From IMG/VR virus record IMGVR_UViG_3300022200_000019, positions 62,001 to 126,000 of that record: a DNA stretch of 64,000 nucleotides, one strand, 5' to 3'. Shown piece after piece: positions 35,760-62,272 of this stretch (position 1 is its first letter; every line of letters begins with the position of its first letter). Under the pieces are notes generated by a model. It worked only from the letters and a program-made list of their open reading frames with translations. It did no database searches and was not told where the DNA came from. Made by a program: the position numbers and the translations under genes.

Positions 35760-36959
35760 ATGTCACAAACAAATACAGAAACAAGTATTAACGAATGTAG
35801 TTTTTGCGGTAAAGCAAAGGAAGAAGTAGTCAAACTTATCGTCGGCGATGGTGTTAGTATTTGTAATAACTGCGTAGAGTTTTGTGTTGAGTTATTAGAA
35901 GAAGAAAAACCTATTAATAAACAAAAACACGAAGCAAAAGATATTGATCCAGTGGAACTTAAAGAGTATTTAGATCAGTTTGTCATTGGGCAGGAGCAAG
36001 CCAAGATGGTGTTAAGTGTTGCTGTTGCTAATCATTATAAACGTATCAACAAAAAAGGTGATGTTAAAGTTGATAAAAGTAATGTATTATTACTTGGCCC
36101 CACCGGGTCAGGTAAAACGTTACTTGCTAAGTCAATTGCTGAATATTTAGACGTACCATTTGCTATTGCTGATGCTACATCATTAACAGAAGCAGGCTAC
36201 GTAGGGGACGATGTTGAAGTATTAATTAGCCGTTTACTACAAAATGCAAATGGCGATGTAGAACGTGCGCAACGTGGTATTGTGTTCGTTGATGAAATTG
36301 ATAAAATTTCACGCAAGTCCGAATCTGCTAGCGTAACACGAGATGTATCTGGTGAGGGCGTGCAACAAGCATTACTTAAAATGGTAGAAGGCACGGTTGT
36401 GCGTGTTCCTAATACCGGCAATAGAAAACACCCAGCCGGAGAAATGACCGAAGTTGATACCAAAAACATTTTGTTCATTGCTGCTGGTGCATTTGTTGGA
36501 TTAGATGAAATTCTTAAAAAGCGTGTACAGGGTGCTGGTATCGGATTTGGAGCAGATGTTAATCGTGTTGATACTACTAAAGTCGACCTATTGCCAGCAG
36601 ATTTAATCAAGTTTGGACTTATCCCAGAATTTGTAGGACGGTTTGCTAGTTTTGCTTTTGTACAAGAACTTTCTCGTGAAGACATGGTATATATTTTAAC
36701 TAGTGTTGAAAACAGTCTATTGCGTCAATTTGAATATTTGTTTAAGTGTAATGAAGTTGAATTAGAATTTGATCCAGAAGCATTGTTGTTAGTTGTAGAT
36801 AAAACAATTGAACAAAAAACTGGCGCACGTGGATTGCGAGCAGAATTAGAGAAGGTATTGTTGCCGCATATGTTTAATTTAGTGCGCTATCACAAAAATA
36901 ATATAAAAAATGTGGTTATTTCTAGGGATTTAATAAATACACCTATAGCATTATTATAA
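35760..36959 (+). CDS. clpX: ATP-dependent Clp protease ATPase subunit ClpX
   Basis: CSFCGK..CNNC zinc domain, [41 protein letters not shown] loop. Confidence 0.95.
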
Positions 36960-36962
36960 ATA
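36955..36962 (+). promoter_or_regulatory. T4-type late promoter (leaderless rpsU)
   Basis: TATAAATA 6 nt before the ATG. Confidence 0.7.
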
Positions 36963-36968
36963 CACTCG

Positions 36969-37202
36969 ATGATCAAACCAAAAGGCACAAAAGTATACGT
37001 AAAAGACGGCAATGTTGAAAAAGCATTGCGTAAACTAAAAAAGAAAGTACAGCGAGGCAACGTACTTCAAGAAGTTAAAGAACGTCAAAGTTACGTACAA
37101 CCATCACAAAAACGTAAAGCCGCTAAAGAAGCAGCAAAGCGACGTTGGGCAAAACACGTTCGTTCGCAAGAATTACCAGTAAAACCTCGCGGTAAGTGGT
37201 AG
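36969..37202 (+). CDS. rpsU: Ribosomal protein bS21
   Basis: VKDGNVEKALRKLKKK...EVKERQSYVQPSQKRK..K.AA.RR. Confidence 0.88.
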   Translation: MIKPKGTKVYVKDGNVEKALRKLKKKVQRGNVLQEVKERQSYVQPSQKRKAAKEAAKRRWAKHVRSQELPVKPRGKW

Positions 37203-37203
37203 A

Positions 37204-37815
37204 TTGGATCCAAACGTTTATTACTTTACCGGGTATAACGAAAAAACCGGAAATTGTAAATTTTTCTATGTGCCGATTCCTAAAAATGGAAGCACGTCAA
37301 TTCCATATATACTTCCAGAATCAACTTTAATTATTAGCAATGAAGATGAAATTTTATTAGATGCTACAGCACTAATTATTCTTCGGGATCCAATTGAACG
37401 TTGGTTTTCTGGGATTGCTCAATTTTATCATGCTGAAAGATTTAATAACAAATTTTTAAAAGATGATTTATTAGATTCAATATATAATCGTGCAATTAAT
37501 GACATTGCGTTAGACCCCCATACATATATACAAACAAGTTTTTTTAAAGATATACAATGTCAAGGACATATATTTTTTTATATGCTTGATAAATTTAAAA
37601 CCAACTCAAAGAAATGGCGAGCGAAAAATAACATTCACTTTCATTTTGACAAATGGGAGAATTTAAATAATTCAAAAAGTTCAATAACAAAAATTAAAAT
37701 GATTAACTATCTAAAACAACGAGTTACAGCTCAGGATTTAAAAAAAATACGTGATTATTACGCCGACGATTATTTGATTATTAATCTTGTAAAAGAATTG
37801 ACAAAATATTCTTAG
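37204..37815 (+). CDS. Sulfotransferase family 2-like protein
   Basis: IPKNGSTS (5'-PSB), LRDPIERWFS (3'-PB), YYADDY. Confidence 0.65.
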   Translation: MDPNVYYFTGYNEKTGNCKFFYVPIPKNGSTSIPYILPESTLIISNEDEILLDATALIILRDPIERWFSGIAQFYHAERFNNKFLKDDLLDSIYNRAINDIALDPHTYIQTSFFKDIQCQGHIFFYMLDKFKTNSKKWRAKNNIHFHFDKWENLNNSKSSITKIKMINYLKQRVTAQDLKKIRDYYADDYLIINLVKELTKYS

Positions 37816-37826
37816 TTTGTTATAAT
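37798..37826 (+). promoter_or_regulatory. Sigma70-type promoter of hsp20 (late ATAAATA also at 37833-37839)
   Basis: TTGACA-17-TATAAT. Confidence 0.8.
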
Positions 37827-37843
37827 ACAAGGATAAATAATAT

Positions 37844-37907
37844 TGTAGACGCCAGGGTTGGGTCTACATACAAAAATAGACTTGCTTAATTTAAGGAGAC
37901 TAACATG
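37844..37907 (+). promoter_or_regulatory. ROSE-like RNA thermometer
   Basis: 5' hairpin tgtagac/gtctaca, then CTTGCTTA-att-TAAGGAG pairing the SD with a bulged G. Confidence 0.65.
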
Positions 37908-38336
37908 ACAAATCTATCTACATTCGACTTCTCACCTCTTAACCGTAGCGCCATTGGCATTGACCGCCTAATGAGTCATATGGTTCGTAACTTTGAATCT
38001 ACACAGCAGGACAACTATCCTCCATACAATATTGTTGAAGATAGTGAAAATGAGTTCACACTCGAAATTGCTGTTGCTGGTTTTAAGAAAGGTGATATCT
38101 CAATTACTTCACAAGACGGACAGCTAACTGTTTCTGGTGAAAAACAAGCGGAAGATACTCGCAAGTACACCTGGAACAAAATTGCTACACGCAAGTTCAG
38201 CCGTTCGTTCACATTAGGTGAATACGTTGAAGTAACCGGTGCTTCTCAAGAAGATGGCATTCTTTCTATTAAGTTAGAACGCATTGTTCCAGAAGCAATG
38301 AAGCCAAAAACTATTGCTATTGACTACAAAGGGTAA
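37905..38336 (+). CDS. Small heat shock protein Hsp20 (IbpA-like)
   Basis: NYPPYNI, LEIAVAGF, LTVSG, FSRSFTL, DGILSI, PEAMKPKTIAI. Confidence 0.93.
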   Translation: MTNLSTFDFSPLNRSAIGIDRLMSHMVRNFESTQQDNYPPYNIVEDSENEFTLEIAVAGFKKGDISITSQDGQLTVSGEKQAEDTRKYTWNKIATRKFSRSFTLGEYVEVTGASQEDGILSIKLERIVPEAMKPKTIAIDYKG

Positions 38337-38353
38337 TATAATGCAGTAACAGG

Positions 38354-38379
38354 ATAGGGAGGGTAATCCTCCCTATTTT
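38354..38379 (+). terminator. Rho-independent terminator
   Basis: atagggagg-gtaat-cctccctat-ttt. Confidence 0.7.
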
Positions 38380-38403
38380 GTTAAATATTAGTATAACAGG
38401 AGA

Positions 38404-38718
38404 ATGGATTTGTCTACTCAAGTTGAAACCAGAACAAGAATCAAGCCAAACATTGCACTGCAAGAACCGCCTATGTTTAAGGTAATCTACCTAAATGATG
38501 AACAAACCAGTATGCAGTTTGTTATTGATAGCCTTGTAGACTTTTTTGATTATGCACCTATTAGTGCTGAAAAGATCACAGAAGATATTCATGTACAAGG
38601 CTCAGCAGTTGTAGCAGTGTTGCCATACGAAATGGCAGAACAAAAAGGCATTGAAGTAACCGTAAGTGCTCGCAGCAACGGTTATCCACTACAAGTCAAG
38701 CTAGAACCCGAAGAATAA
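38404..38718 (+). CDS. clpS: ClpAP adaptor ClpS
   Basis: PPMFKVIYLNDEQTSMQFV..IHVQG.AVVAV..YEMAEQK..YPL. Confidence 0.9.
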   Translation: MDLSTQVETRTRIKPNIALQEPPMFKVIYLNDEQTSMQFVIDSLVDFFDYAPISAEKITEDIHVQGSAVVAVLPYEMAEQKGIEVTVSARSNGYPLQVKLEPEE

Positions 38719-38721
38719 CAC

Positions 38722-39087
38722 ATGTATATTATCGTTGGCGAAGATGCTGCCTCACAGGTAGATACCAAATATCTGGTTTTTGAATTAGATACCATTCTTT
38801 ATAATAAAAATGAAGCCCCACTTAAAAGTTATTGTGTTGTTGACAATGAACATGTTCCCTTAATTGAGGTTAATCGAATCGGTGAACTACAAGAACTACA
38901 TCAAAATTTAATTAAAAATTATCATAAACGTAACTGGAATTTTTGCTTACAAGCAATTGAACATCTGAAAGGAAAATTTCGTGGCGAATTAGATACATTT
39001 TATGATGATTTGGAAAAACGCTGCTCGGTATTTCAACAATTCGAACCGCCCGCAAACTGGACTGGTGTTTACGATAAGACCAAGTAA
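38722..39087 (+). CDS. Stand-alone homolog of the C-terminal region of the CHASE2 adenylate cyclase
   Basis: ELHQNL..YHKRNW..LKGKFRGELDTFY..RC..NWTG aligns with cyclase ELHNNM..YKERDF..LKGEFDGQMDKYY..RC..SWNG. Confidence 0.65.
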   Translation: MYIIVGEDAASQVDTKYLVFELDTILYNKNEAPLKSYCVVDNEHVPLIEVNRIGELQELHQNLIKNYHKRNWNFCLQAIEHLKGKFRGELDTFYDDLEKRCSVFQQFEPPANWTGVYDKTK

Positions 39088-39117
39088 TATACGCCGTTTA
39101 TCATCATAAAACCCCTA

Positions 39118-39125
39118 TATAAATA
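39118..39125 (+). promoter_or_regulatory. T4-type late promoter of the curli module
   Basis: TATAAATA upstream of csgF. Confidence 0.7.
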
Positions 39126-39152
39126 CTAGGACAAGTAGAATGGGGGTTCAAC

Positions 39153-39644
39153 TTGAAAAGCAACGACGATGGCCTTGCGGCTATTGTAGCAATTATTCTA
39201 ACAGTAATCTTTGTACTGTTTACATTTAAAGCAGAGGCAGGTGAGTTAACTCACCAGTTTCATAGTCCTGCGTTCAGCGGCAATGGGTATAGTACCCACG
39301 TCCTAACTATAGATCAGTTAGAACAACAACGTAAGCAGAAAATAAAAGACGACGAACAAGCCGCTATTGATAAAGCAGAACGAGACGCTAAATCAACTAA
39401 TATCTACAAGTTTAAGAACAACTTAGAAAGTCGTGTTTACGCACAACTATCTAAGCAAATTGCAGACGCTCTTTTTGGCGAAAGCAGTAATTTAGCAGAC
39501 ACAAGTTGGTCGGAAGTAGAAACCCCATTCGGTGATACCATTAAATGGAAACGTGAGAACGATATTGTATATGTTGAAATATACGATAGCAATGGCGATT
39601 TAGCCTCTGAGTTCCAGACACCGGTTGGGGATTTCGCATTTTGA
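39153..39644 (+). CDS. csgF: Curli assembly protein CsgF-like
   Basis: Signal/TM segment ending AEA, then GELTHQFHSPAFSG (cf. CsgF GTMTFQFRNPNFGG); adjacent to csgG. Confidence 0.75.
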   Translation: MKSNDDGLAAIVAIILTVIFVLFTFKAEAGELTHQFHSPAFSGNGYSTHVLTIDQLEQQRKQKIKDDEQAAIDKAERDAKSTNIYKFKNNLESRVYAQLSKQIADALFGESSNLADTSWSEVETPFGDTIKWKRENDIVYVEIYDSNGDLASEFQTPVGDFAF

Positions 39645-40483
39645 CACGCTTAATTCTACTACTACTCGCTGCTGGTATACTTGGAGGGTGCGTAGCAAAC
39701 CCGCCTAAACAGTACGAACCCCCATCTCGAATTGTAACTCACGTTGAAGGATTTATGGATATCCCGCCTCCTAGTGGCGGTAAACTTGTTGCGGCTGTAT
39801 ATGGTTTTCAAGATAAAACTGGACAGCGTAAACCCTCTGACAAACTTGCGAATATTAGTTACGCAGTAACGCAAGGTGCTGAAGTATGGGTTATTAAAGC
39901 CCTCAAGGAAGTGGGCGGAGGAGAATGGTTTAGAGTTGTAGAGCGTGTTGGATTAGACAATTTAACAAAAGAGCGTCAAATTATCCGACAAGCACGTCAG
40001 CAAGTTAATGACGAAACACCTCTTAAACCAATGCTGTTTGCTGGTGTGTTAGTTGAAGGAGCCATCACTGGTTACGACTCTAACACGTTAACCGGCGGAG
40101 CAGGAGCCAGATACTTAGGTATTGGTCCAAGCACAGAATACCGCCAGGATGTGGTAACTGTGAGTATGCGGTTAATAAGCGTTCAAAGTGGAGAAGTCTT
40201 ACTTAATACAAGTGTTACTAAAACTATTGTTAGTTTTGGCGATCACGTAAGTTTGTTCCGGTTTATTGATATGGGAACAAAGGCACTTGAGCTAGAATCA
40301 GGAACCACTGAAAACGAGCCGGTGAACTATGCTGTTCGTGTAGCAATCGAACAATGTGTAGTTGAACTGGTTAAAGATGGCGAACGCATAGGTATTTGGT
40401 CATATAAGACTCACGAAGAAGGAGCCAATGATACTAAAGAAGAAGTAAAGACGGATGAAAACTCCGTGCGTGGAGAAAAATAA
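39641..40483 (+). CDS. csgG: Curli secretion channel lipoprotein CsgG
   Basis: Lipobox LGGC; VYGFQDKTGQRKP, AVTQGA, WFRVVER.GLDNLTKERQIIR, GGAGARYLGIG, YRQDVVTV. Confidence 0.93.
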   Translation: MTRLILLLLAAGILGGCVANPPKQYEPPSRIVTHVEGFMDIPPPSGGKLVAAVYGFQDKTGQRKPSDKLANISYAVTQGAEVWVIKALKEVGGGEWFRVVERVGLDNLTKERQIIRQARQQVNDETPLKPMLFAGVLVEGAITGYDSNTLTGGAGARYLGIGPSTEYRQDVVTVSMRLISVQSGEVLLNTSVTKTIVSFGDHVSLFRFIDMGTKALELESGTTENEPVNYAVRVAIEQCVVELVKDGERIGIWSYKTHEEGANDTKEEVKTDENSVRGEK

Positions 40484-41172
40484 TGCGCAAAATATTATAT
40501 GTCCTATTAGGACTTTGGAGTTCAACAGTATTTGCCAGTGACGTGTATATTGATCAAGCAGGTTCAAGTACAACTATTGATATTACACAAACTGGTTCAA
40601 GCAACGAAGTTAGCGGCGACGCTGGCACTACAACTGCGGCAAGTGTAGATGGTACAGGTATTGACTTGGACATTACACAAATTGGTTCAAGCAACATAGC
40701 AGAAATTAACTTAGATACTGCTACAAGTGCTGACGTAGAATATACTGCTACAGGTAGTGATAACTTGTTTGACATTTATGTTAATGGTGGTTCCTCAAAT
40801 ACTGCTACAGTAAACGTTACTGGTGACAGCAACGAAGTAACAATTTGTGGAACCAATGGAGCAGCAAACTCAGCAGCAGGCTTTGCTACTATTACAAGTT
40901 CGGGCATAACTACTGCTGGAACAACTTGCTCAACAGGCATTGCGAGTAATGGTAACACTAATACTGTTACTGCGTATGGCGACTATAACTTAGTTAACAT
41001 TGAGCAAGGAGCAGGTGTTGGTGGATCAACTAACACAGTTACCATTGGCACAGCACTAGCAGGCGGCGATAACAACGTTGTAAACATTGTACAGGATAAC
41101 TTGGAAGCAAATACCGTAACATTAACAGTTGACGGTAGCAGCAACCGTGTCAATATTTTACAAGATAACTAA
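40483..41172 (+). CDS. Curlin-repeat protein (CsgA/CsgB-like)
   Basis: Signal peptide, then repeats of the IxQxGxxN type (YIDQAGSS, ITQTGSSN, ITQIGSSN, IVQDN). Confidence 0.75.
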   Translation: MRKILYVLLGLWSSTVFASDVYIDQAGSSTTIDITQTGSSNEVSGDAGTTTAASVDGTGIDLDITQIGSSNIAEINLDTATSADVEYTATGSDNLFDIYVNGGSSNTATVNVTGDSNEVTICGTNGAANSAAGFATITSSGITTAGTTCSTGIASNGNTNTVTAYGDYNLVNIEQGAGVGGSTNTVTIGTALAGGDNNVVNIVQDNLEANTVTLTVDGSSNRVNILQDN

Positions 41173-42262
41173 TTTCCTACTGATAGGGTTGTTCTCAGTA
41201 TCAGCCCTGGCAGCAATAGGAACTATCACAGAGCAACAGGGTCCTGATGCTCAACTTAAACGCGACAGTGAAACTATAGTTGCTCGCAAAGGCACTGGTC
41301 TTGAAATGGATGACGAAGTAAGAACGGCAGCAACTAAACTTAATTTAACATTTGAAGATGATACAAAGGTAGCAATGACTGAACAAAGTGTATTGCTTAT
41401 TGATGACTTTGTTTACGATCCCAATGCTAAAACTGGCAAACTAGCGATGCAAGTAGCAATGGGCACAGTTCGTTATGCGTCAGGCGGCATTGCTAAGAAC
41501 AACAGAGAAAACGTTCGTATGCGCACACCAACAGCAACCATATCAGTACGCGGTACTGACTTTGCTATGGTTGTAGACGAAGTTGGCCGTAGTCTAGTAA
41601 CATTACTCCCCAGTTGTCCAGACTTTGGTTTAGTAGAAAACAAAGATGATGAAGAAAAATGTCCAGTTGGTGAGATTATGGTAAGCACAGATGCTGGGTA
41701 TGTATTAATGAATCAAGCATACCAAACTACAATTGTAGCAAGTGCGTTACAAGAGCCAACGAAACCCAAAATTTTAGACGATAAGCCAACATTAAACAAC
41801 TTGCTTATTATTTCGCCACCGCCTCAATTCCCACGTGGGTTTGACTCAGCAGAAGAAGAAGCACAACAAGTTACATTCTTAGATGCTGACTTGTTAGAGT
41901 TTGATGACTTAGCACAGGATTTATTAGCAGACGATAGTTTAGAGCAAAATGACTTGGATCAAGATAAACTAGAAGGCGAGTTTTTAGATGACATGTTAAT
42001 GATGTTATTAGATCCGGGATTGGATGACGCACTCAAAGAACGTGATGGTGTATTGCCGACCTTAGCAGATTATCCTTGGGTAAAAGGTTATTACAACGAA
42101 CAAGAAATTACAGTTTATTCTGAACGCCCACCACACATTGCGGAAATTAAAACAACTCGCGATACAGACGCAGATGTAGTTATTACGCAGGACGGTGTAA
42201 AAGCAACTATTATTGAGAACGGAGGCGGCAATGTTATTATCAACATTACGCAAACTCAGTAG
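41129..42262 (+). CDS. Exported FecR-domain protein with acidic linker and curlin-like C-terminal strand
   Basis: Signal peptide; DEVRT..FEDDT..GTVRYASG..RTPTATISVRGTDF; ends GGGNVIINITQTQ. Confidence 0.75.
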   Translation: MTVAATVSIFYKITNFLLIGLFSVSALAAIGTITEQQGPDAQLKRDSETIVARKGTGLEMDDEVRTAATKLNLTFEDDTKVAMTEQSVLLIDDFVYDPNAKTGKLAMQVAMGTVRYASGGIAKNNRENVRMRTPTATISVRGTDFAMVVDEVGRSLVTLLPSCPDFGLVENKDDEEKCPVGEIMVSTDAGYVLMNQAYQTTIVASALQEPTKPKILDDKPTLNNLLIISPPPQFPRGFDSAEEEAQQVTFLDADLLEFDDLAQDLLADDSLEQNDLDQDKLEGEFLDDMLMMLLDPGLDDALKERDGVLPTLADYPWVKGYYNEQEITVYSERPPHIAEIKTTRDTDADVVITQDGVKATIIENGGGNVIINITQTQ

Positions 42263-43571
42263 TCTATTATTCTTATTTGCTACAACTGTGTGGGCAGATA
42301 GTGTTCTCATCATTCACCAAAACTACTCCAGTGTTCATTCCAATGTCGGCGGACGTCTAACTAACGAAGGGCATACGGTAACTTACTCTACATCAGAAGT
42401 AAATGCTAGTACTATTGCCAACTACAATCAAGTTTGGGACGTAAGGTATAGTTCGCTGTCAAGCACACAGGCATCAGTGTATGACACGTTTGTTCAGAAT
42501 GGAGGATTCTTATACTTAGTAACAGAGAATCCAAGTTGTTGCGGTACACGAAATAGTGCTGTTGCTTCAATGATATCTAATATGGGCGGCGGCAGTGGAT
42601 TAACGATTGGTGGAAGTGCTGGTTCAACTTCAAACAATATCACACAGGTTAATACAACTTATATGACTGCTTTGTCATCAGGAACTTATATTACATTTGC
42701 CGCAGGTAGTAACATCACAAACTATGGCAACGGACAATGGTTGTTCAAAGATAGCATTGGTAGAGTTGGCGGCGTTATGTGGGTAGGCAATGCTGGAAAC
42801 TTGTCACAAGGGTACTCGGGCACGGTAGTCACGGTTGCTGACATCAACTGGTTAGATGCTACTCGTTTTACAGGAACAAACATCACAGCCTTAGACGATA
42901 TTATCGCAGGTATTGTTGCTGGTACCGTATCAGGTACTATCAGTGGAAGTGGAAACACTGGCGGCGGAGCAGCCGCAACACCTGTGTACAGTTCAGGCAT
43001 AACAGCCGCACAAACCCTAAGAAGAAATGCATTCACAGGAACAGGTGCGGAGATAAATGCTGATATCAACGGTAGTAACAATGATGTTTATATACATCAA
43101 GCAGGAACGCATTATATAGAACTTGGGATAGTAGGAAGTTCAAATACAGTTAACTTAGAGCAAGCATCAACTCAAGTAGGAATCATACATTACGCAGAGA
43201 CAGATATCATCGGCGATAGCAATACATTAGATTTGATACAATCCGGTGATGGCAATAAAACAGCATTTATTACAGTAACAGGTGATAACAATATAGCAGA
43301 TATCGCACAGCGCGATAGCGGACAGCATTATCTACAACTTGATTTAATAGGTGGTGGTCATGATGCCACTGTAGTACAAGAAGGTACAGGCAATCACGCA
43401 GCCACAGTAGAGTTAACAAACTCGGGTGGAGCCTGGACATTTGGGTTGACACAATCAGGCAGTACGGATAAAGAATATAGTTTACCGCACTCAATGAGTG
43501 ACGGTAGCACAACAAGCGGAACGTGTTATGTAGCAGCAGGATGCTCGTTAACAGTCATACAAAGTGATTAA
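42231..43571 (+). CDS. Curlin-repeat protein with N-terminal globular passenger domain
   Basis: GGAGG RBS, signal peptide, about 200-aa alpha/beta domain, Gly linker, C-terminal GxxN.V.I.Q repeats. Confidence 0.7.
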   Translation: MLLSTLRKLSSLLFLFATTVWADSVLIIHQNYSSVHSNVGGRLTNEGHTVTYSTSEVNASTIANYNQVWDVRYSSLSSTQASVYDTFVQNGGFLYLVTENPSCCGTRNSAVASMISNMGGGSGLTIGGSAGSTSNNITQVNTTYMTALSSGTYITFAAGSNITNYGNGQWLFKDSIGRVGGVMWVGNAGNLSQGYSGTVVTVADINWLDATRFTGTNITALDDIIAGIVAGTVSGTISGSGNTGGGAAATPVYSSGITAAQTLRRNAFTGTGAEINADINGSNNDVYIHQAGTHYIELGIVGSSNTVNLEQASTQVGIIHYAETDIIGDSNTLDLIQSGDGNKTAFITVTGDNNIADIAQRDSGQHYLQLDLIGGGHDATVVQEGTGNHAATVELTNSGGAWTFGLTQSGSTDKEYSLPHSMSDGSTTSGTCYVAAGCSLTVIQSD

Positions 43572-43614
43572 CTCTGTATATTTCTAACTGTTTGATTAAT
43601 AATAAATATCTTTA

Positions 43615-44025
43615 ATGAAAAAATTGGTGTGTGCGGCACTTGCTGTATACTGCTTAAATGTTACAGCACACAGTCGCGATGATTATGAATACATAAACTG
43701 GAATTCATTTCGTGTTTATGAAGAAATAGAAAAACGCCCAAAACTTGATGTTTTTGCTGGGCATAGTGTTGGTTTTGGTTACACACAAAAGTATAATCAA
43801 ATTGATACACTTGTTGTAGGCGAAGTAGGTGGCGCTCATAGCCGCTGGCTAGGCCCTAGAACTCAATTATACACAGAAGCAAATGTAGCAACAGACTTGT
43901 TTACAGAAGCAAAAGTAAACATCAATCATTTTAACAACAAATATTCAGTTACAAGATTTGTTCTACGCAAAGACAACACTGACCAAGGTGGCTTTGTTGG
44001 ATTTGGTTATATGCGTCGTTTTTGA
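43615..44025 (+). CDS. Small exported protein, possible outer-membrane beta-barrel
   Basis: Signal peptide, alternating beta pattern, C-terminal GFVGFGYMRRF. Confidence 0.45.
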   Translation: MKKLVCAALAVYCLNVTAHSRDDYEYINWNSFRVYEEIEKRPKLDVFAGHSVGFGYTQKYNQIDTLVVGEVGGAHSRWLGPRTQLYTEANVATDLFTEAKVNINHFNNKYSVTRFVLRKDNTDQGGFVGFGYMRRF

Positions 44026-44039
44026 CACTAAATATCCGT

Positions 44040-46082
44040 ATGAAGAAACTACTGAGTCCATGGTGGGCATTGATTACCTTATTTGTTCTCACGGCTGTAT
44101 TTTTACAACGTCCTAACTTTACTGAAAGTATCAAATTAAATTACTTTGACACACTTATTACTAGTAGAGAAGCAGTAGACAATAACATTTATATTGTTAA
44201 TATTGACGAAGCCGCACTAGAGAAATATGGTCAGTATCCTTTTCCACGTAACATTTACGGCGACATTATCAAAGACATTTACAATCGTGGCGCTGGATTA
44301 GTTATTTGGAATATTATGATGCCGGAAGCAGATCGCTTTGGCGGAGATGAACAGTTAGCAGGAGTTATGACTGAATTTCCTGTTATATTAGCAAGCCGCC
44401 CCTCTGTCAAAAATAAAAATGTTCCAATGCAACCGGCATCAAATACAATCAATGCACAGTATGTGGATCAGTTATTTCCTTATCCAGGTATTATTTCAAA
44501 TATTCCAGAACTTGAACAAGTAGCAGTAGGCTCTGGTATTGTTTCAACTGAACCTGAAATCGATGGCGTTAACAGAAGATTACCAGCACTTGCTGTGGTT
44601 GGTGATTTGGTGTATCCAGGTATTGCTCTTGAAACACTTCGTGTTATTGCAGGACAACCTAGTTTTGATGTTAAACTAGCACCTAATGGTATTGATAAAT
44701 TTAGAATACGTGGTCACGGACCTATTGCTACAGATGAAATGGGACGTATTTGGATTGATTGGGCACAGCGTAGCAAACAGGTTAGCGTAATCAATATGCC
44801 TGCAGACTTTGGCGGCGCAGTAGTTATCGTAGATGTGACTGCGGCAGGCATTGCTAACCCTGTTCCTACAGCGTTAGGAGCAAAATTTCCCGGTGAAGTT
44901 CACTCAGCAATGCTAGGAACAATGTTTAATAAAACAAATATTCAACGTCCATACTGGGCAGATACATTTGAAATTCCTGCGGCATTTTTAGCAGGACTAT
45001 TATTAATTTTAGTATCACGTTGGACCTGGCTAGGACTAGGATTAACTGTTGTGCTTGGCGGTGCTGTTGTCCCTGCGTCAATGTATATGTTTGACACAGA
45101 ACTATTTTTGTTAGACGCAACAGGTCCTCTTGCAATTATTGTCCTTGTGGCATTACACACATACGGTATTAAATTTGTACGTGAGTTCTTAGAAAAGCAA
45201 GCAATCAAGAAACAGTTTGCCGGTTACTGCTCACCGGAAGTTGTTCGTTTATTACAAGAAAACCCGGATCTTATTAAGAAGGGTGTTAAGAAAGACGTAA
45301 GTGTTATGTTCTCAGATTTGCGCGGCTTTACTCCAATTGGCGAACACTTTGGCGCAGACGTTAAAGGTTTAGGAGATTATATGAATGGCTATATGGATGC
45401 TATTACGCAGCCTATCCTAAATCACAACGGTATGGTTATTAAGTATGTAGGTGACGCAAGCATGCACATACAAGGTGCGCCTATTGAAGATGACAGACAC
45501 GCATACAACATTGTCGAAACAGGCTTACAAATGTTAGACGCTGTTGACGCTTATACACGAGAAGCAGAAGCACGTGGTTTGCCACCAGCAGCAATGGGTT
45601 TCGGCATTAACTCAGGCGAAGGCTTTATTGGTGAAATGGGCAGCACAGCAAGACACAGTTATGACATCTTAGGCGATATGGTTTCAACAGCGGCTCGATT
45701 AGAAGCACGTTGTAAAGCATATGGTGTGCTATGTATCATTGGCGCAGAAACATACAACAGAACAGCGGATGACTTCTTCTACTTATATCTGGACAATTTA
45801 CAACCAAAAGGCAAAACAGTAGCAGATTTCATTTATACAGCGTTACGCATCAAAGGAAATATCACGGACTATGGCACTGCACGTGAGTTACATAATAATA
45901 TGCATCAAGCATATAAAGAAAGAGATTTTGATAAAGCAATTGGTATGTGCATGGGCCTGAAAGGTGAATTTGACGGGCAAATGGACAAATATTATAAAAT
46001 GTGGATTGAACGTTGCGAATTAATGAAGACCATGAAATTAGATAAGAGCTGGAATGGCGAGTGGATTGCTAACGAAAAATAA
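44040..46082 (+). CDS. CHASE2-domain class III adenylate cyclase
   Basis: IVNIDEAALEKYGQYPFPR (CHASE2), three TMs, FSDLRGFT, KYVGDA, GINSG, YDILGDMVSTAARLE; ATG 44040 follows CTAAATA. Confidence 0.92.
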   Translation: MKKLLSPWWALITLFVLTAVFLQRPNFTESIKLNYFDTLITSREAVDNNIYIVNIDEAALEKYGQYPFPRNIYGDIIKDIYNRGAGLVIWNIMMPEADRFGGDEQLAGVMTEFPVILASRPSVKNKNVPMQPASNTINAQYVDQLFPYPGIISNIPELEQVAVGSGIVSTEPEIDGVNRRLPALAVVGDLVYPGIALETLRVIAGQPSFDVKLAPNGIDKFRIRGHGPIATDEMGRIWIDWAQRSKQVSVINMPADFGGAVVIVDVTAAGIANPVPTALGAKFPGEVHSAMLGTMFNKTNIQRPYWADTFEIPAAFLAGLLLILVSRWTWLGLGLTVVLGGAVVPASMYMFDTELFLLDATGPLAIIVLVALHTYGIKFVREFLEKQAIKKQFAGYCSPEVVRLLQENPDLIKKGVKKDVSVMFSDLRGFTPIGEHFGADVKGLGDYMNGYMDAITQPILNHNGMVIKYVGDASMHIQGAPIEDDRHAYNIVETGLQMLDAVDAYTREAEARGLPPAAMGFGINSGEGFIGEMGSTARHSYDILGDMVSTAARLEARCKAYGVLCIIGAETYNRTADDFFYLYLDNLQPKGKTVADFIYTALRIKGNITDYGTARELHNNMHQAYKERDFDKAIGMCMGLKGEFDGQMDKYYKMWIERCELMKTMKLDKSWNGEWIANEK

Positions 46083-46382
46083 TTAAGGGTGGAAATTACC
46101 TTGGAAACAATGGCGTATTTCGTGCCCAAATATTTCGTGTGAAGTATGCTTATTTGTGTAAACAACACATGATTTGCCATCTATCGACACAGTAGCACAG
46201 CCTAACCACCCATCATATCTGTACGGTAATCCAACCTTTTCGCAATGCTCTGTAATATCGCCAGCAGTAATCCAGGTGATAGTTATTGACTGTGAATCTG
46301 GTTTTTGAACGAATTGAACATCCTGACCAGCGTAAGCCATTGAAGATAAACAAAATATAGTAGGTATAATTACCTTTCTCAT
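46083..46382 (-). CDS. Small exported protein with HExxH motif
   Basis: Signal peptide, GHEIRHC; ATAAATA 6 nt before the ATG. Confidence 0.55.
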   Translation of the reverse strand: MRKVIIPTIFCLSSMAYAGQDVQFVQKPDSQSITITWITAGDITEHCEKVGLPYRYDGWLGCATVSIDGKSCVVYTNKHTSHEIFGHEIRHCFQGNFHP

Positions 46383-46391
46383 CTAATTTAT

Positions 46392-46775
46392 TTATTTCTT
46401 AGATGGAGGATTATTAACTGCTGCTTTTTCTGCTTGTCTGTGTAAGTTCTTTTCTTGTACTTTAGTTTGGTCGAACTGCTTACTAATTGAAGCATACTGA
46501 TCAACGATTGCTTGAGCATCTTCTTCTTTGATTTGGCCGTGTTTACCGTAGTATTCTAATACTATGCTTAACTTGGTGTTTAAGCGAATCATGTCATTAT
46601 CTAACATGCGGATACGGTCTACTAGAGCAATAAGTGTTTTCTTTGTATCGCCGATAACCGGATCAATTTCGTCGGTTACCCAACGCCATATAAAATACAC
46701 AAAATATCCAAGACCCATTGCGGCAATAACTGGAAAGCCGTATTCATTGATCGCTTGTACAATATCGTTAGGCAT
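46392..46775 (-). CDS. Single-TM coiled-coil membrane protein (YvrJ/BhlA-like GFP motif)
   Basis: YGFPVIAAMGLGYFVYF, then RIRMLDNDMIRL; paralog of 46993. Confidence 0.6.
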   Translation of the reverse strand: MPNDIVQAINEYGFPVIAAMGLGYFVYFIWRWVTDEIDPVIGDTKKTLIALVDRIRMLDNDMIRLNTKLSIVLEYYGKHGQIKEEDAQAIVDQYASISKQFDQTKVQEKNLHRQAEKAAVNNPPSKK

Positions 46776-46863
46776 ACAGTACTCCTACTAAAAAGCCAAC
46801 TATTAGGCCAGCAACAAATCCGGTTGCTAACAGTAATGTAAAATCACAACATTCTTTGTTCAT
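46768..46863 (-). CDS. 31-aa glycine-zipper membrane peptide (not in ORF track)
   Basis: MNKECCDFTLLLATGFVAGLIVGFLVGVLYA; ATGA-coupled upstream, overlaps the next start. Confidence 0.6.
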   Translation of the reverse strand: MNKECCDFTLLLATGFVAGLIVGFLVGVLYA

Positions 46864-47000
46864 CTTCCTAGCATAGTCCCAATAAAAATACCAAGCATAA
46901 TACCTAGTGTAAACCCAATACCGCCGTATAACCTACGCATCGGTGCTTCTAGTTTATTTTGTGCTTCTAGATAAGCAAGTGTTGCTTGATGTTTAATCAC
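46860..47000 (-). CDS. 46-aa glycine-zipper membrane peptide (not in ORF track)
   Basis: GTG start; ...RRLYGGIGFTLGIMLGIFIGTMLGR; fills the gap exactly with overlapping start and stop. Confidence 0.55.
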   Translation of the reverse strand: MIKHQATLAYLEAQNKLEAPMRRLYGGIGFTLGIMLGIFIGTMLGR

Positions 47001-47271
47001 GCCGTGCGTCTTCCTTGCCTTCGTTAGCAGCGAGTCTATCTACATTTGGTCGTACACCAATTACATGACTCATAAGTGCGTCAATTTTAACTAAATCATT
47101 GTTCATTGTTTGAACACGGTTGTCCAATGCGTGAATAATGCCTTTAACACCGTTTACGTCACCGGTTACACCGGCTAAGATAAACTTAACTGTTAATAAT
47201 ACAAAATATCCTGCCGCCAATGCGCCGGCAATTGGAAAACCAACTTCACCAACTATTGCTAAAAAATCCAT
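46993..47271 (-). CDS. Single-TM coiled-coil membrane protein (YvrJ/BhlA-like GFP motif)
   Basis: VGFPIAGALAAGYFVLL, then RVQTMNNDLVKI; GGAG RBS; TATAAATA on the minus strand at 47302-47309. Confidence 0.65.
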   Translation of the reverse strand: MDFLAIVGEVGFPIAGALAAGYFVLLTVKFILAGVTGDVNGVKGIIHALDNRVQTMNNDLVKIDALMSHVIGVRPNVDRLAANEGKEDARRD

Positions 47272-47304
47272 ATAAACTCCCGTTATATGCTATGTTAACT
47301 TTAT

Positions 47305-48615
47305 TTATATGCAGATATCAAAAAGGTGCGGATAGGTTTTAATAATTTGATCAGCAAACGCAGGCTGCGTATTTTTTAAATGAGTTAAAATGCTTAAAAT
47401 ATCTTTTTTTGTATTAGGTAAAATTTTTCCAGTTTGCCGATATAAAAAATCTATTTGTTTAAACCGATTAACGTTTAATTCTCTACTATTTTGTTCTTCT
47501 AGTGCATTAGACATGTTTTGGTGTAATTCTTCAAGAATTTGCTGTTCAAACTTATCGCTGTAGAAATGACGGTGATTATGCTCGACTATTTGTTTTGCTT
47601 TGTTGAGTAAATTATTAAATTTATCAATTGGTAGGCTGCTTATTGTATGTATTAATTCTATGATTTTTTGATGCCTAACTTTAGAGTCTGCGATGTTATC
47701 ATAGCTCTCATCCCACAATGACTCAAATGTTTTAAATCCGTAATGTCTGAGATATTTCAAGCTACCAGGCCCCGCAAATAGTATGAAAGGCTGCTTCATA
47801 ACCATGGGTTTAAAAACTTTTTCAGTTAAATGAATTTTTTCGGTATCAAATAATGTTTCTAACACAATTTGTATCTGAAAGTTTTTGCAATCGTTTGGGT
47901 CAATTATAGCACTTGCGTCACTGCCGTGCTCATTTTTGGCTAGGTTCCAGGACAAAAAAATCTGTTGATTCGTTATTTGTTGTTGCATTGTTGGTTGTAT
48001 TTCGAAATAAACTTCGTTAGATACAGGCAACAAGTCATTTAATACATTGTAACGATACGCTCGTGTTCCGGTACAATCTCTGGAATACATTCCAAAACGT
48101 TGTGCATGATTGTTATTTTCCATGTCGTAATGTTTCCAATGTCTAAACCAATCTCTGCTGATTAAACCATGATAAAAATAATAGCAAGAAATAAAACCAT
48201 GGCGCTCAAGTAATTTAATCTCGTTGCTGTTTAATTCGCTATGACCGATGATTGAAGAATTAATGGTTGACAACATCATTATAAATTGTTTAAACTTTGA
48301 TAAATTTTCTGTATAAAGGTCATAGGCTTCTTGATCAAACCATTTTATTCTATTTTTTGAAATTGAGCTTTTGTCAATTTCAAATAATTCAAAATTTAAA
48401 GGTTCTTGGTCTAGCAAGTATATTCTACCATATAACCAATTGTGATTTAAATTATCGGTTTTATGCCTATGTATTTCTTCGTCACATAATGCAACCATAT
48501 TCCATAAATTTCGATTACCATGTTGGTTAAATGCATATACAAAGTTTTTGTTATTTTTATTTGGCCAACCATACTTGTGTGTTAAATAGTCATAAAAATT
48601 ATTAACGGAGAACAT
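47305..48615 (-). CDS. GT10-like glycosyltransferase, paralog 3
   Basis: IVLET...LTEKVFKPMVMKQPFILFAG..SL..L..YGFKTF..WDESYD. Confidence 0.5.
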   Translation of the reverse strand: MFSVNNFYDYLTHKYGWPNKNNKNFVYAFNQHGNRNLWNMVALCDEEIHRHKTDNLNHNWLYGRIYLLDQEPLNFELFEIDKSSISKNRIKWFDQEAYDLYTENLSKFKQFIMMLSTINSSIIGHSELNSNEIKLLERHGFISCYYFYHGLISRDWFRHWKHYDMENNNHAQRFGMYSRDCTGTRAYRYNVLNDLLPVSNEVYFEIQPTMQQQITNQQIFLSWNLAKNEHGSDASAIIDPNDCKNFQIQIVLETLFDTEKIHLTEKVFKPMVMKQPFILFAGPGSLKYLRHYGFKTFESLWDESYDNIADSKVRHQKIIELIHTISSLPIDKFNNLLNKAKQIVEHNHRHFYSDKFEQQILEELHQNMSNALEEQNSRELNVNRFKQIDFLYRQTGKILPNTKKDILSILTHLKNTQPAFADQIIKTYPHLFDICI

Positions 48616-61627: not shown

Positions 61628-62272
61628 ATGAAACTTGTTGAAGAATTACGCTGGTACATGAATATACTAACTGAAACTGATAACATCAATCAGGGCGTTA
61701 GCGATAATCTTGGTTTGATTAAGGGTGTATTTTCCTCTCAAGGTGTAGATTGGGTAGAACCGTACTTAACAACCGAAGGTGCAATTAATCGACGCGAAGT
61801 TGGTAACCACCGTGGACTGTATTGGATTTGGCCTGAAATTAATTTTTATTTTGGCAAAGCAGCAACTAACACAGTAATTGGGCGGCACAGAACACATCGT
61901 CTAAAACTTGATGTTAATCTATCAGGATTGTACGGTCCACCTGGTGAAAAGAAAGAACCAAAAAACACTTTCCCAGAAGGTTGGAAAGAAGCAGTCTGCA
62001 AGTACATTATTGGTGGATGCCCACAGATTCCCAGCCATTGGGAAAAAGCCACCCATCCAACAGATCCCAACCAGAAAAAATGGGTCAAACCAGGAGTATT
62101 AGATTTTCCTGTTAAACATGTGGTGGATGTGGATAAATTGCCTGTTCTAGTTTGGGATCTAGATCATTTAGATGCAAAAACCATATCAAAATTAGAAGAT
62201 CTGATCAATGTCACCATCTGGCCGTACGCAAATTCAGGCACTTATCGCCGTAGAAAGCAACAAAATCAGTAA
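61628..62272 (+). CDS. GIY-YIG-like nuclease (tentative)
   Basis: GLYWI..FYFGKA...R..H; CATAAATA 5 nt before the ATG. Confidence 0.45.
   Translation: MKLVEELRWYMNILTETDNINQGVSDNLGLIKGVFSSQGVDWVEPYLTTEGAINRREVGNHRGLYWIWPEINFYFGKAATNTVIGRHRTHRLKLDVNLSGLYGPPGEKKEPKNTFPEGWKEAVCKYIIGGCPQIPSHWEKATHPTDPNQKKWVKPGVLDFPVKHVVDVDKLPVLVWDLDHLDAKTISKLEDLINVTIWPYANSGTYRRRKQQNQ

Follow-up and report, generated by a model that had tools for sequence, protein, structure and literature searches.

The 64,000-nucleotide stretch analysed here (the window), positions 62,001 to 126,000 of the 212,917-bp IMG/VR virus record IMGVR_UViG_3300022200_000019, is part of a large phage contig and carries a curli secretion cassette in which csgF, csgG and two curlin genes are joined by genes for a FecR-domain protein, an adenylate cyclase with a CHASE2 domain, and two small membrane proteins, s92 and s127. 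Judged from sequence and gene content, the csgFG and curlin genes have the FecR-fold protein and the CHASE2 cyclase as obligatory partners: co-conservation of the two with csgFG extends over more than 100 viral loci, which show three different gene orders, and one cellular copy, and in phages s92 and s127 accompany them. The reading that we prefer, and to which we give about an even chance of being right, is that the cassette constitutes a late envelope-spanning module in which the FecR-fold protein would couple the curli pore or fibre to CHASE2, with cyclic AMP (cAMP) reporting the state of secretion or of the fibre.

A search seeded with CsgG matched more than 587 IMG/VR viral contigs, 80 of which were kept. 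Among these loci, the FecR gene is present in 53 of the 53 with at least 3 kb of downstream sequence, the cyclase gene in 35 of the 36 with at least 9.5 kb, and s92/s127 in 32 of 34. The search seeded with the cyclase recovered 41 viral loci, on contigs of up to 372 kb, and the full set of genes was found wherever the flanking sequence sufficed. A first-pass annotation of the window, made from its letters and translations, had regarded the locus as more than an adhesin module, and had named a lack of co-conservation in relatives as one outcome that would refute its proposal. FecR and the cyclase remain with csgFG across the three gene orders, so the objection that they might not be co-conserved falls, and this linkage, together with the recurrence of FecR/CHASE2 pairs in bacteria, supports the idea.

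The gene orders differ mainly in where s92 and s127 are found. In architecture A, represented by phages HTVC008M and Melnitz, the genes run s92-s127-csgF-csgG-curlin-FecR-curlin-cyclase on one strand. Architecture B is the order of the window, in which s127 and s92 lie downstream of the cyclase and are convergent with it. In architecture C, the series csgF-csgG-curlin-FecR-s92-s127 is convergent with the cyclase gene. The cassette is also carried by viral contigs of jumbo size, between 215 and 372 kb (L104, L107, L116, L117, L121, L160, L175 and L193). Its presence in these as well as in genomes of about 140 kb, the size of pelagimyophages, indicates a host and phage range wider than the pelagiphage literature implies.

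When bacterial genomes were searched with the FecR protein as the seed, 12 loci with the full cassette were obtained. Most of them carry s92/s127, some share homologues of the ligase, Hsp20 or ClpS of the window, and most look like phage contigs that have been binned into metagenome-assembled genomes (MAGs) of many phyla. The Caulobacteraceae MAG contigs L011 (5776-13085) and L012 encode csgF, csgG, two curlins, FecR and the CHASE2 cyclase without s92/s127. The neighbours of this copy are genes for methylmalonyl-CoA mutase, acyl-CoA dehydrogenase, amidohydrolase, DsbA and TetR, with no PHROG matches, and a CpdA/SpdA-like cyclic-nucleotide phosphodiesterase is encoded immediately upstream of the cassette. 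The Caulobacteraceae cyclase nests in the phage clade beside that of L013 with 100/100 support, in a tree that was rooted at its midpoint and in which the cellular copy has a long branch. Given this position inside the phage clade, the cellular copy provisionally looks secondarily acquired, and the possibility that it is the ancestral form was rejected.

FecR-domain proteins and CHASE2 proteins are also encoded side by side in loci unrelated to curli. In about 68 bacterial FecR-domain loci of more distant relationship, a gene for a CHASE2 protein, usually a cyclase, is directly adjacent in 12 cases, and none of these contains csgG or csgF. Published cases include the Campylobacterota, where a CHASE2 cyclase, a phosphodiesterase, a FecR-domain protein and a TPR protein are clustered (PMC9239204), as well as the Burkholderiales and Pseudomonas, where a LysM-FecR protein is found beside a CHASE2 kinase (PMC5192318). 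In the cyaD1 region of Sinorhizobium meliloti, the FecR-domain protein SMc02177 is among the cAMP/Clr-regulated target genes (PMC5498481).

The FecR-domain protein of the window consists of a signal peptide, a FecR fold (residues ~30-215), an acidic, Leu-rich linker (~220-300) and a C-terminal domain of six strands (~310-377), which ends in a curlin-like I-x-I-x-Q motif. An AlphaFold2 (AF2) model, calculated from 84 sequences with the rows from GenBank records L001 and L002 excluded, has a predicted local distance difference test (pLDDT) value of 86, being confident at 30-215 and 310-377 and of low confidence at 220-300. The best PDB match of the FecR fold, according to Foldseek, is the PupR CCSSD (6ovk_R, 4e-4), with 4m0n also matching (3e-3). 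In every solved case that we know of, the FecR fold is periplasmic and acts against an outer-membrane channel or receptor.

Although this fold of the FecR/PupR C-terminal signalling domain is present, the phage protein is, by its domain composition, not a FecR orthologue. It holds no N-terminal anti-sigma domain and no transmembrane (TM) helix, consisting of a signal-peptide-like segment and then the FecR fold, and neither FecI (an extracytoplasmic function sigma factor) nor FecA (a TonB-dependent transducer) is encoded among the cassette genes of the window or in the cassettes of related loci. For these reasons, its reading as an iron regulator is not supported. The same evidence bears on a second explanation, in which an adhesin cassette is combined with an independent regulator: the fibres would aggregate host cells or block superinfection, and FecR and the cyclase would sense an unrelated cue, such as iron or a nutrient, merely regulating host physiology or fibre production. 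This is the published interpretation, with aggregation of host cells (‘sibling capture’) or a superinfection block by the fibres (PMC7029224, PMC9599517), and it fits the presence of signal-peptide curlin-repeat proteins with a complete CsgG/CsgF pair. Nevertheless, we regard it as unlikely, since the FecR protein lacks the anti-sigma and TM segments, and the cassette lacks FecI and FecA and contains no transcription factor, while cultures of Melnitz showed no clumping (PMC9004378). In addition, a physical coupling of this protein to the fibre system is favoured by its tail, which is specific to curli-linked copies, and by the constant location of its gene between those of the two curlins.

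This tail has been compared with curlins at the level of profiles. In hhalign, its final strand-loop-strand matches the C-terminal end of curlins with a score of 23.5 (P 2.9e-5), and the controls (the template in reverse, 30 shuffles of the columns and the C-termini of five unrelated proteins) all score 12.5 or less. The terminal hydrophobic-x-hydrophobic-x-Gln motif is found in 92 of 98 FecR proteins and in 72 of 110 first curlins, compared with 6.6% of all ORFs (open reading frames). The tail is absent from the bacterial FecR proteins adjacent to CHASE2 and present in the cellular curli-linked copies, which indicates an addition tied specifically to curli. When 1.84 billion representatives were searched with a profile of the C-terminal domain, only FecR-family proteins or fragments of them were retrieved, plus two repetitive false positives. 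A domain common to this protein and to curlins as a whole was therefore rejected, only the terminal strand-loop-strand motif being alike.

The linker of the window protein contains 23 Asp/Glu versus 2 Lys/Arg in 81 residues, and its net charge in 98 members of the FecR family has a median of -9.5 and a maximum of 0, never being positive. The superposition of the N-terminal half of the FecR domain on 5ix9 has a TM-score, normalised to the latter, of 0.73, a root-mean-square deviation of 1.2 Å over 63 columns and 24% identity, and a profile search places the similarity, marginal by sequence (E 0.041), at family positions 25-93. In the MpIBP/LapA adhesins, the module solved as 5ix9 serves for retention by plugging the TolC-like pore (PMC5550230, bioRxiv 10.1101/198937). 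This module seems to be a relative of the N-terminal part of the FecR domain, a link that we have not found stated in the cited literature. The same structure was considered as a match for the C-terminal domain and rejected, as a separate AF2 model of that domain (pLDDT 93) retrieved neither 5ix9 nor any other PDB entry.

One way of combining these features, which we consider quite unlikely, makes the FecR-fold protein a trans-envelope tether through which the pull, load or loss of the fibre would be passed mechanically to the cyclase. Its N-terminal domain, too large for the CsgG constriction and akin to a retention module, would for those reasons stay in the periplasm against CHASE2, and the acidic linker of ~85 residues would thread the CsgG/CsgF channel, a step that is pure inference. 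The curlin-like C-terminal domain would be built into the surface fibre, and the infected cell would convert cell contact, aggregation or phage adsorption into cAMP. In Melnitz, the CsgG/CsgF channel has been modelled as positively charged (PMC9004378).

The cyclase is organised, according to hydropathy, into a first TM helix (residues 3-23), a periplasmic CHASE2 domain (~24-306), three further TM helices (~307-380), a cytoplasmic cyclase domain and a C-terminal extension of ~90 residues. All 83 curli-linked cyclases that were aligned share both metal Asp residues, the substrate Lys, the Arg and the flanking Gly/Asp, and this conservation argues for a probably active, ATP-specific enzyme. Two other positions, located in the SYDILGD and MVSTAARLE motifs of the window protein, covary strictly. 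In 59 of the 83 enzymes, including those of the window and Melnitz, an Asp in the substrate position goes with Ser in the place of the transition-state Asn (type 1), while the other 24, including that of HTVC008M, combine Thr/Ser with the canonical Asn (type 2), as do all 8 bacterial cyclases. Type 1 may represent a compensated active-site variant. The curli-linked enzymes form one clade with 96/99 support. In locus L008 (4825-6663), the cyclase is present as two adjacent ORFs, one for the CHASE2 part and the other for the end of CHASE2 plus the cyclase part, which suggests a stop codon, a frameshift or an assembly error.

With respect to the curli machinery, Pfam searches with hidden Markov models agree with these identities given in the first-pass annotation: csgF, csgG, a curlin, the FecR protein, a second curlin (with a passenger domain in that annotation) and the CHASE2 cyclase. 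CsgG and CsgF are predicted to form an outer-membrane type VIII secretion channel, with the curlin-repeat proteins as its putative fibre substrates. CsgG matches E. coli CsgG structures at 1e-54 and the NCBIfam CsgG model at 3e-56, with 191 bits, under the equivalog cut-off of 505; its constriction retains the Asn and has Ile in place of Phe and Ser in place of Tyr. The mature N-terminus of CsgF resembles the CsgG-binding segment of E. coli CsgF when aligned by eye, and phmmer gives no match of CsgF to the solved CsgF structure. Curlin 1, whose family is found in every related locus, is the candidate fibre subunit. In curlin 2 the repeats are confined to the C-terminal 190 residues (8e-11), the ~260 N-terminal residues match no Pfam family, and the members of its family, found in 72 loci, range from 105 to 813 amino acids.

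Using E. coli queries, phmmer recognised no CsgE, CsgC, CsgD, CsgA or CsgB among the ORFs of the window, in a search of low sensitivity in which only CsgG matched, and the cassette proteins match no Pfam family of CsgE, CsgC or CsgD. This is in agreement with the earlier statement that csgE and csgD are not recognisable in the window. The lack of CsgE and CsgC, detected by this same search and also reported elsewhere (PMC9599517), would suit a periplasmic quality-control role, in which the FecR protein binds unsecreted curlin, replacing CsgE/CsgC, and signals overload to the cyclase rather than the state of the outside. The curlin-like tail of the protein, its signal peptide and the absence of a membrane anchor are consistent with such a role; against it, the protein is dissimilar to both CsgE and CsgC, and we consider this possibility decidedly improbable. 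It is, however, a variant of the coupling that we favour, from which it differs only in the coupling site, and the present data fit both.

According to the reading that we prefer, phages would install one late-expressed, envelope-spanning module in their Gram-negative hosts, the parts of which are all extracytoplasmic by prediction except for the cyclase domain and possibly the tails of s92/s127. The FecR-fold protein would provide the coupling. Its FecR domain, at the N-terminus, would interact with CHASE2 in the periplasm, as in the bacterial gene pairs, and its acidic linker and curlin-like C-terminal domain would tie it to curlin subunits, to the fibre or to the CsgG/CsgF channel. In this manner, the state of secretion or of the surface fibre would set the cytoplasmic synthesis of cAMP late in infection, and the effector of cAMP would probably be a host protein. 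Of the readings considered, this putative envelope-to-cAMP relay is the best supported. The only CHASE2 cyclases that have been characterised are activated by an extracellular protein via the outer-membrane barrel NsrA (PMC13001267).

Several observations weigh against such a relay. The curlin-like nature of the FecR tail depends on a 33-column profile match, the Pfam Curlin_rpt model fails to detect it, and the C-terminal domain, as mentioned above, has no fold match in the PDB. The cyclases of the window type bear Ser instead of the transition-state Asn, and no gene for a protein that binds cyclic nucleotide monophosphates or resembles CRP was found in the window or in the phage loci, in a weak test with phmmer and E. 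coli CRP. No RNA-seq run is listed for this phage, and the absence of clumping in Melnitz cultures also counts on this side.

The small proteins s92 and s127 are paralogues with an N-terminal hydrophobic helix, which bears a G-F/L-P motif (GFP in s127), and a coiled-coil-like tail. They match phrog_18771, a family of no assigned function; no Pfam family was matched, and kinase domains were not retrieved even with the E-value limit at 10. Their location makes it probable that they correspond to the genes labelled ‘HK’ (histidine kinase) ahead of csgF in the published cluster (PMC9599517). This label was rejected, as HisKA/HATPase_c domains were not found and the proteins have only 92 and 127 residues. 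The same transcription unit includes orf99, located 9 nt downstream of s127. Its sole match is a weak one in PHROG (6e-5), to a family with no assigned function, and related cassettes contain no homologue.

Both transcription units of the cassette are headed by the T4-type late-promoter-like motif TATAAATA (Table 1). In the relatives, the exact motif is found at 24 of 124 csgF heads and at 30 of 104 s92 heads, compared with 0-2% for internal cassette genes and a background of 1.6%; in the whole window it is not enriched (8 found vs 7.2 expected). Its placement fits two co-regulated late transcription units. The plus-strand cassette genes, from 39153 to 46082, overlap or abut, as the tight coupling described earlier had implied, and the proteins that they encode start with a signal peptide, or a lipobox in the case of CsgG, with the exception of the cyclase (hydropathy).

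The stretch assigned to the system in the first-pass annotation begins at 38722 and takes in orf121. This needs correction: the motif is located directly upstream of csgF, which leaves orf121 upstream of the promoter and outside the unit, and a homologue of orf121 was found in no related locus. At the other end, the sequence that it included up to 47309 does belong to the cassette, as it holds s92, s127 and the second motif, although those genes were not named.

The motifs on both units are also compatible with a lysis-timing device, as proposed for Melnitz (PMC9004378). Here the CsgG/CsgF pore, possibly with holin-like s92/s127, would permeabilise the envelope when infection ends, and FecR, CHASE2 and cAMP would tune the timing. 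The small size and N-terminal TM segment of s92/s127, and the fact that their nearest named look-alikes are the YvrJ/BhlA holins, point in this direction, but the match is weak: the atlas scores for YvrJ and Holin_BhlA are 0.84-0.85, below the reliable range, a PHROG holin matches with E 0.005 over 18 residues, and Pfam finds none. Moreover, the cellular cassette is devoid of s92/s127 and is not in a lysis context, and the conserved signal-peptide curlins are unexplained by an outer-membrane pore. We therefore hold this device to be distinctly unlikely.

Table 1. Features of the cassette and of its surroundings (positions in the window; aa, amino acids).
Feature	Position	Strand	Basis and remarks
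ClpX	35760-36959	+	identity by reading translation
Ribosomal protein S21	36969-37202	+	by reading translation; TATAAATA at 36955
Hsp20-like protein	37905-38336	+	by reading translation
ClpS-like protein	38404-38718	+	by reading translation
orf121	38722-39087		outside the csgF unit
TATAAATA, T4-type late-promoter-like motif	39118-39125	+	heads csgF operon; 28 nt upstream of csgF TTG start
csgF, 163 aa	39153-39644	+	PF10614 8e-14; TTG start; signal peptide (hydropathy)
csgG, 280 aa, lipoprotein, predicted outer-membrane curli channel	39641-40483	+	PF03783 2e-50; LGGC lipobox
Curlin-repeat protein 1, 229 aa	40483-41172	+	Curlin_rpt 9e-7; signal peptide
FecR-domain protein, 377 aa	41129-42262	+	PF04773 7e-9; start codon uncertain
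Curlin-repeat protein 2, ~446 aa from ATG at 42231	42213/42231-43571	+	Curlin_rpt 8e-11; signal peptide
Orphan ORF, 136 aa	43615-44025	+	signal-peptide-like N-terminus; between curlin 2 and cyclase; not core member
CHASE2 class III adenylate cyclase	44022/44040-46082	+	PF05226 4e-30; Guanylate_cyc PF00211 2e-15; likely start ATG at 44040
orf99, 99 aa	46083-46382	-	signal-peptide-like N-terminus; overlapping HExxH-type motifs near C-terminus
s127, 127 aa, small membrane protein, cassette member	46392-46775	-	phrog_18771 1e-29; synteny
s92, 92 aa, paralogue of s127, cassette member	46993-47271	-	phrog_18771 4e-30; synteny
TATAAATA, late-promoter-like motif	47302-47309	-	heads s92-s127(-orf99) unit; motif search of window

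Between curlin 2 and the cyclase, the related loci show a variable slot, which is occupied in the window by the 136-aa ORF. This ORF has no Pfam, NCBIfam or PHROG match and no homologue in related loci, and only a single relative, 93% identical, was found among 5.8 billion proteins. It had been described as a small barrel-like protein forming part of the system; as an unconserved orphan in a variable slot, it cannot be counted as an NsrA-like core part, and its candidacy as an NsrA analogue was rejected. Of the sensor system originally suggested, the co-conserved multi-part module stands, but neither this ‘barrel’ nor orf121 is a member of it; the signals suggested for it (superinfection, cell contact or aggregation) and the tuning of lysis timing are speculative, and the direction of information flow is the one that the domain topology implies. 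In other loci the slot contains an LpxH/YfcE-like metallophosphoesterase (8 loci), a GT4 glycosyltransferase (7), a RimK-like ATP-grasp ligase (3) or a NifU-like protein (3); examples of slot genes are L096 7306-8127, L102 7959-9907 and L153 13980-14492. A role of the metallophosphoesterase as a cAMP phosphodiesterase was rejected, since the protein resembles LpxH/YfcE and has no relationship to the CpdA/SpdA-like phosphodiesterase found with the cellular copy.

The cassette is surrounded by genes for ribonucleotide reductase, DNA ligase, DnaB-type and other helicases and a tail-spike-like protein. Directly upstream of it, from 35760 to 38718 on the plus strand, runs a series of proteostasis and translation genes of host-like type, and in locus L007 homologues of Hsp20 and ClpS are likewise located ahead of the cassette. 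DNA nearly identical to the window is found in freshwater metagenomes, with partial matches in estuary and marine samples, and the GenBank phage collection holds neither near-identical DNA nor a close DNA relative. Searches of the window for tRNAs and Rfam families gave zero matches.

To our knowledge, CHASE2 is a common bacterial sensor domain without a known ligand or mechanism, and few multi-gene additions made by aquatic phages to their hosts are as widespread as this cassette. If the FecR-fold protein does couple the pore or fibre to the CHASE2 cyclase, the reason why phages carry curli genes would be explained, a self-contained system of six to eight genes would become available as a tractable model for FecR-like/CHASE2 signalling, and phages would be able to endow infected cells with a new surface-to-cytoplasm sense. 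In addition, two misleading labels are removed, that of ‘iron regulator’ for the FecR protein and that of ‘histidine kinase’ for s92/s127.

Compared with the curli system of E. coli and Salmonella (csgBAC-csgDEFG), the window shares a close CsgG (1e-54), a similar mature N-terminus of CsgF and substrates with curlin repeats. It differs in that no CsgE, CsgC, CsgD or CsgB-type nucleator is recognised, in the constriction changes from Tyr to Ser and from Phe to Ile, and in the addition of FecR, the cyclase and s92/s127 as partners. The RTX adhesins LapA/MpIBP resemble the FecR protein in their layout, with a folded N-terminal module, a flexible linker and a C-terminal part of surface type; their route, however, is a type I secretion system with a TolC-like pore rather than a type VIII secretion system (T8SS), and no LapG or LapD is encoded in the window cassette.

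The NsrA-CyaD1/D2/K-Clr pathway of S. meliloti likewise relies on a CHASE2 cyclase that requires both a beta-barrel in the outer membrane and a protein signal from outside the cell (PMC13001267). In the window, the barrel is CsgG and not NsrA, and no Clr/CRP gene was found, in the weak test mentioned above. The bacterial FecR/CHASE2 pairs (Campylobacterota, Burkholderia and the S. meliloti cyaD1-smc02177-spdA locus) have in common with the window a FecR protein with a signal peptide beside a CHASE2 receptor, and their CHASE2 and cyclase domains are homologous to those of the phage enzyme. Nevertheless, the bacterial FecR proteins, at ~230-290 aa, are short and have neither the acidic linker nor the curlin-like domain, csgFG and curlins are not nearby, and the curli-linked cyclases form a separate clade. 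The cellular curli-linked copy is like the S. meliloti spdA locus in also having a CpdA/SpdA-like phosphodiesterase.

The closest system is the viral T8SS cluster of HTVC008M-type myophages, HTVC023P-type podophages and the Methylophilales phage Melnitz, with the same families and order as the window: small membrane proteins, csgF, csgG, curlin, FecR, second curlin and adenylate cyclase. CsgE and CsgD are absent from the marine-phage cluster and from the window cassette alike. The csgFG part was published in 2020 and 2022 (PMC7029224, PMC9004378), and the cluster including FecR, cyclase and ‘HK’ was described in pelagiphage podoviruses and myoviruses in 2022 (PMC9599517), so the locus of the window adds a new and divergent member, carried by a large phage from freshwater. 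A published survey found the cassette at all 65 GOV2.0 stations. Unlike the marine isolates, the window copy is carried by a freshwater/estuarine phage contig of ~213 kb, shows a protein identity to them of only 35-55%, has s92/s127 inverted downstream of the cyclase (architecture B) and holds an orphan in the variable slot.

In the record of Melnitz, the two partner genes are annotated as ‘FecR domain protein’ and ‘adenylate/guanylate cyclase’. In the papers on the cluster, FecR is read as an iron regulator, and CHASE2, the bacterial FecR-CHASE2 pairing and the curlin-like tail are not noted; the word ‘CHASE’ occurs 0 times in PMC9599517. With respect to those papers, several points appear to be new: the recognition of CHASE2 and its connection to the FecR/CHASE2 pairs of bacteria, the tail that is specific to the curli-linked FecR proteins, the finding that s92 and s127 are not kinases, the existence of three architectures that preserve the linkage, the covarying active site of the cyclase, and the cellular copy with its phosphodiesterase.

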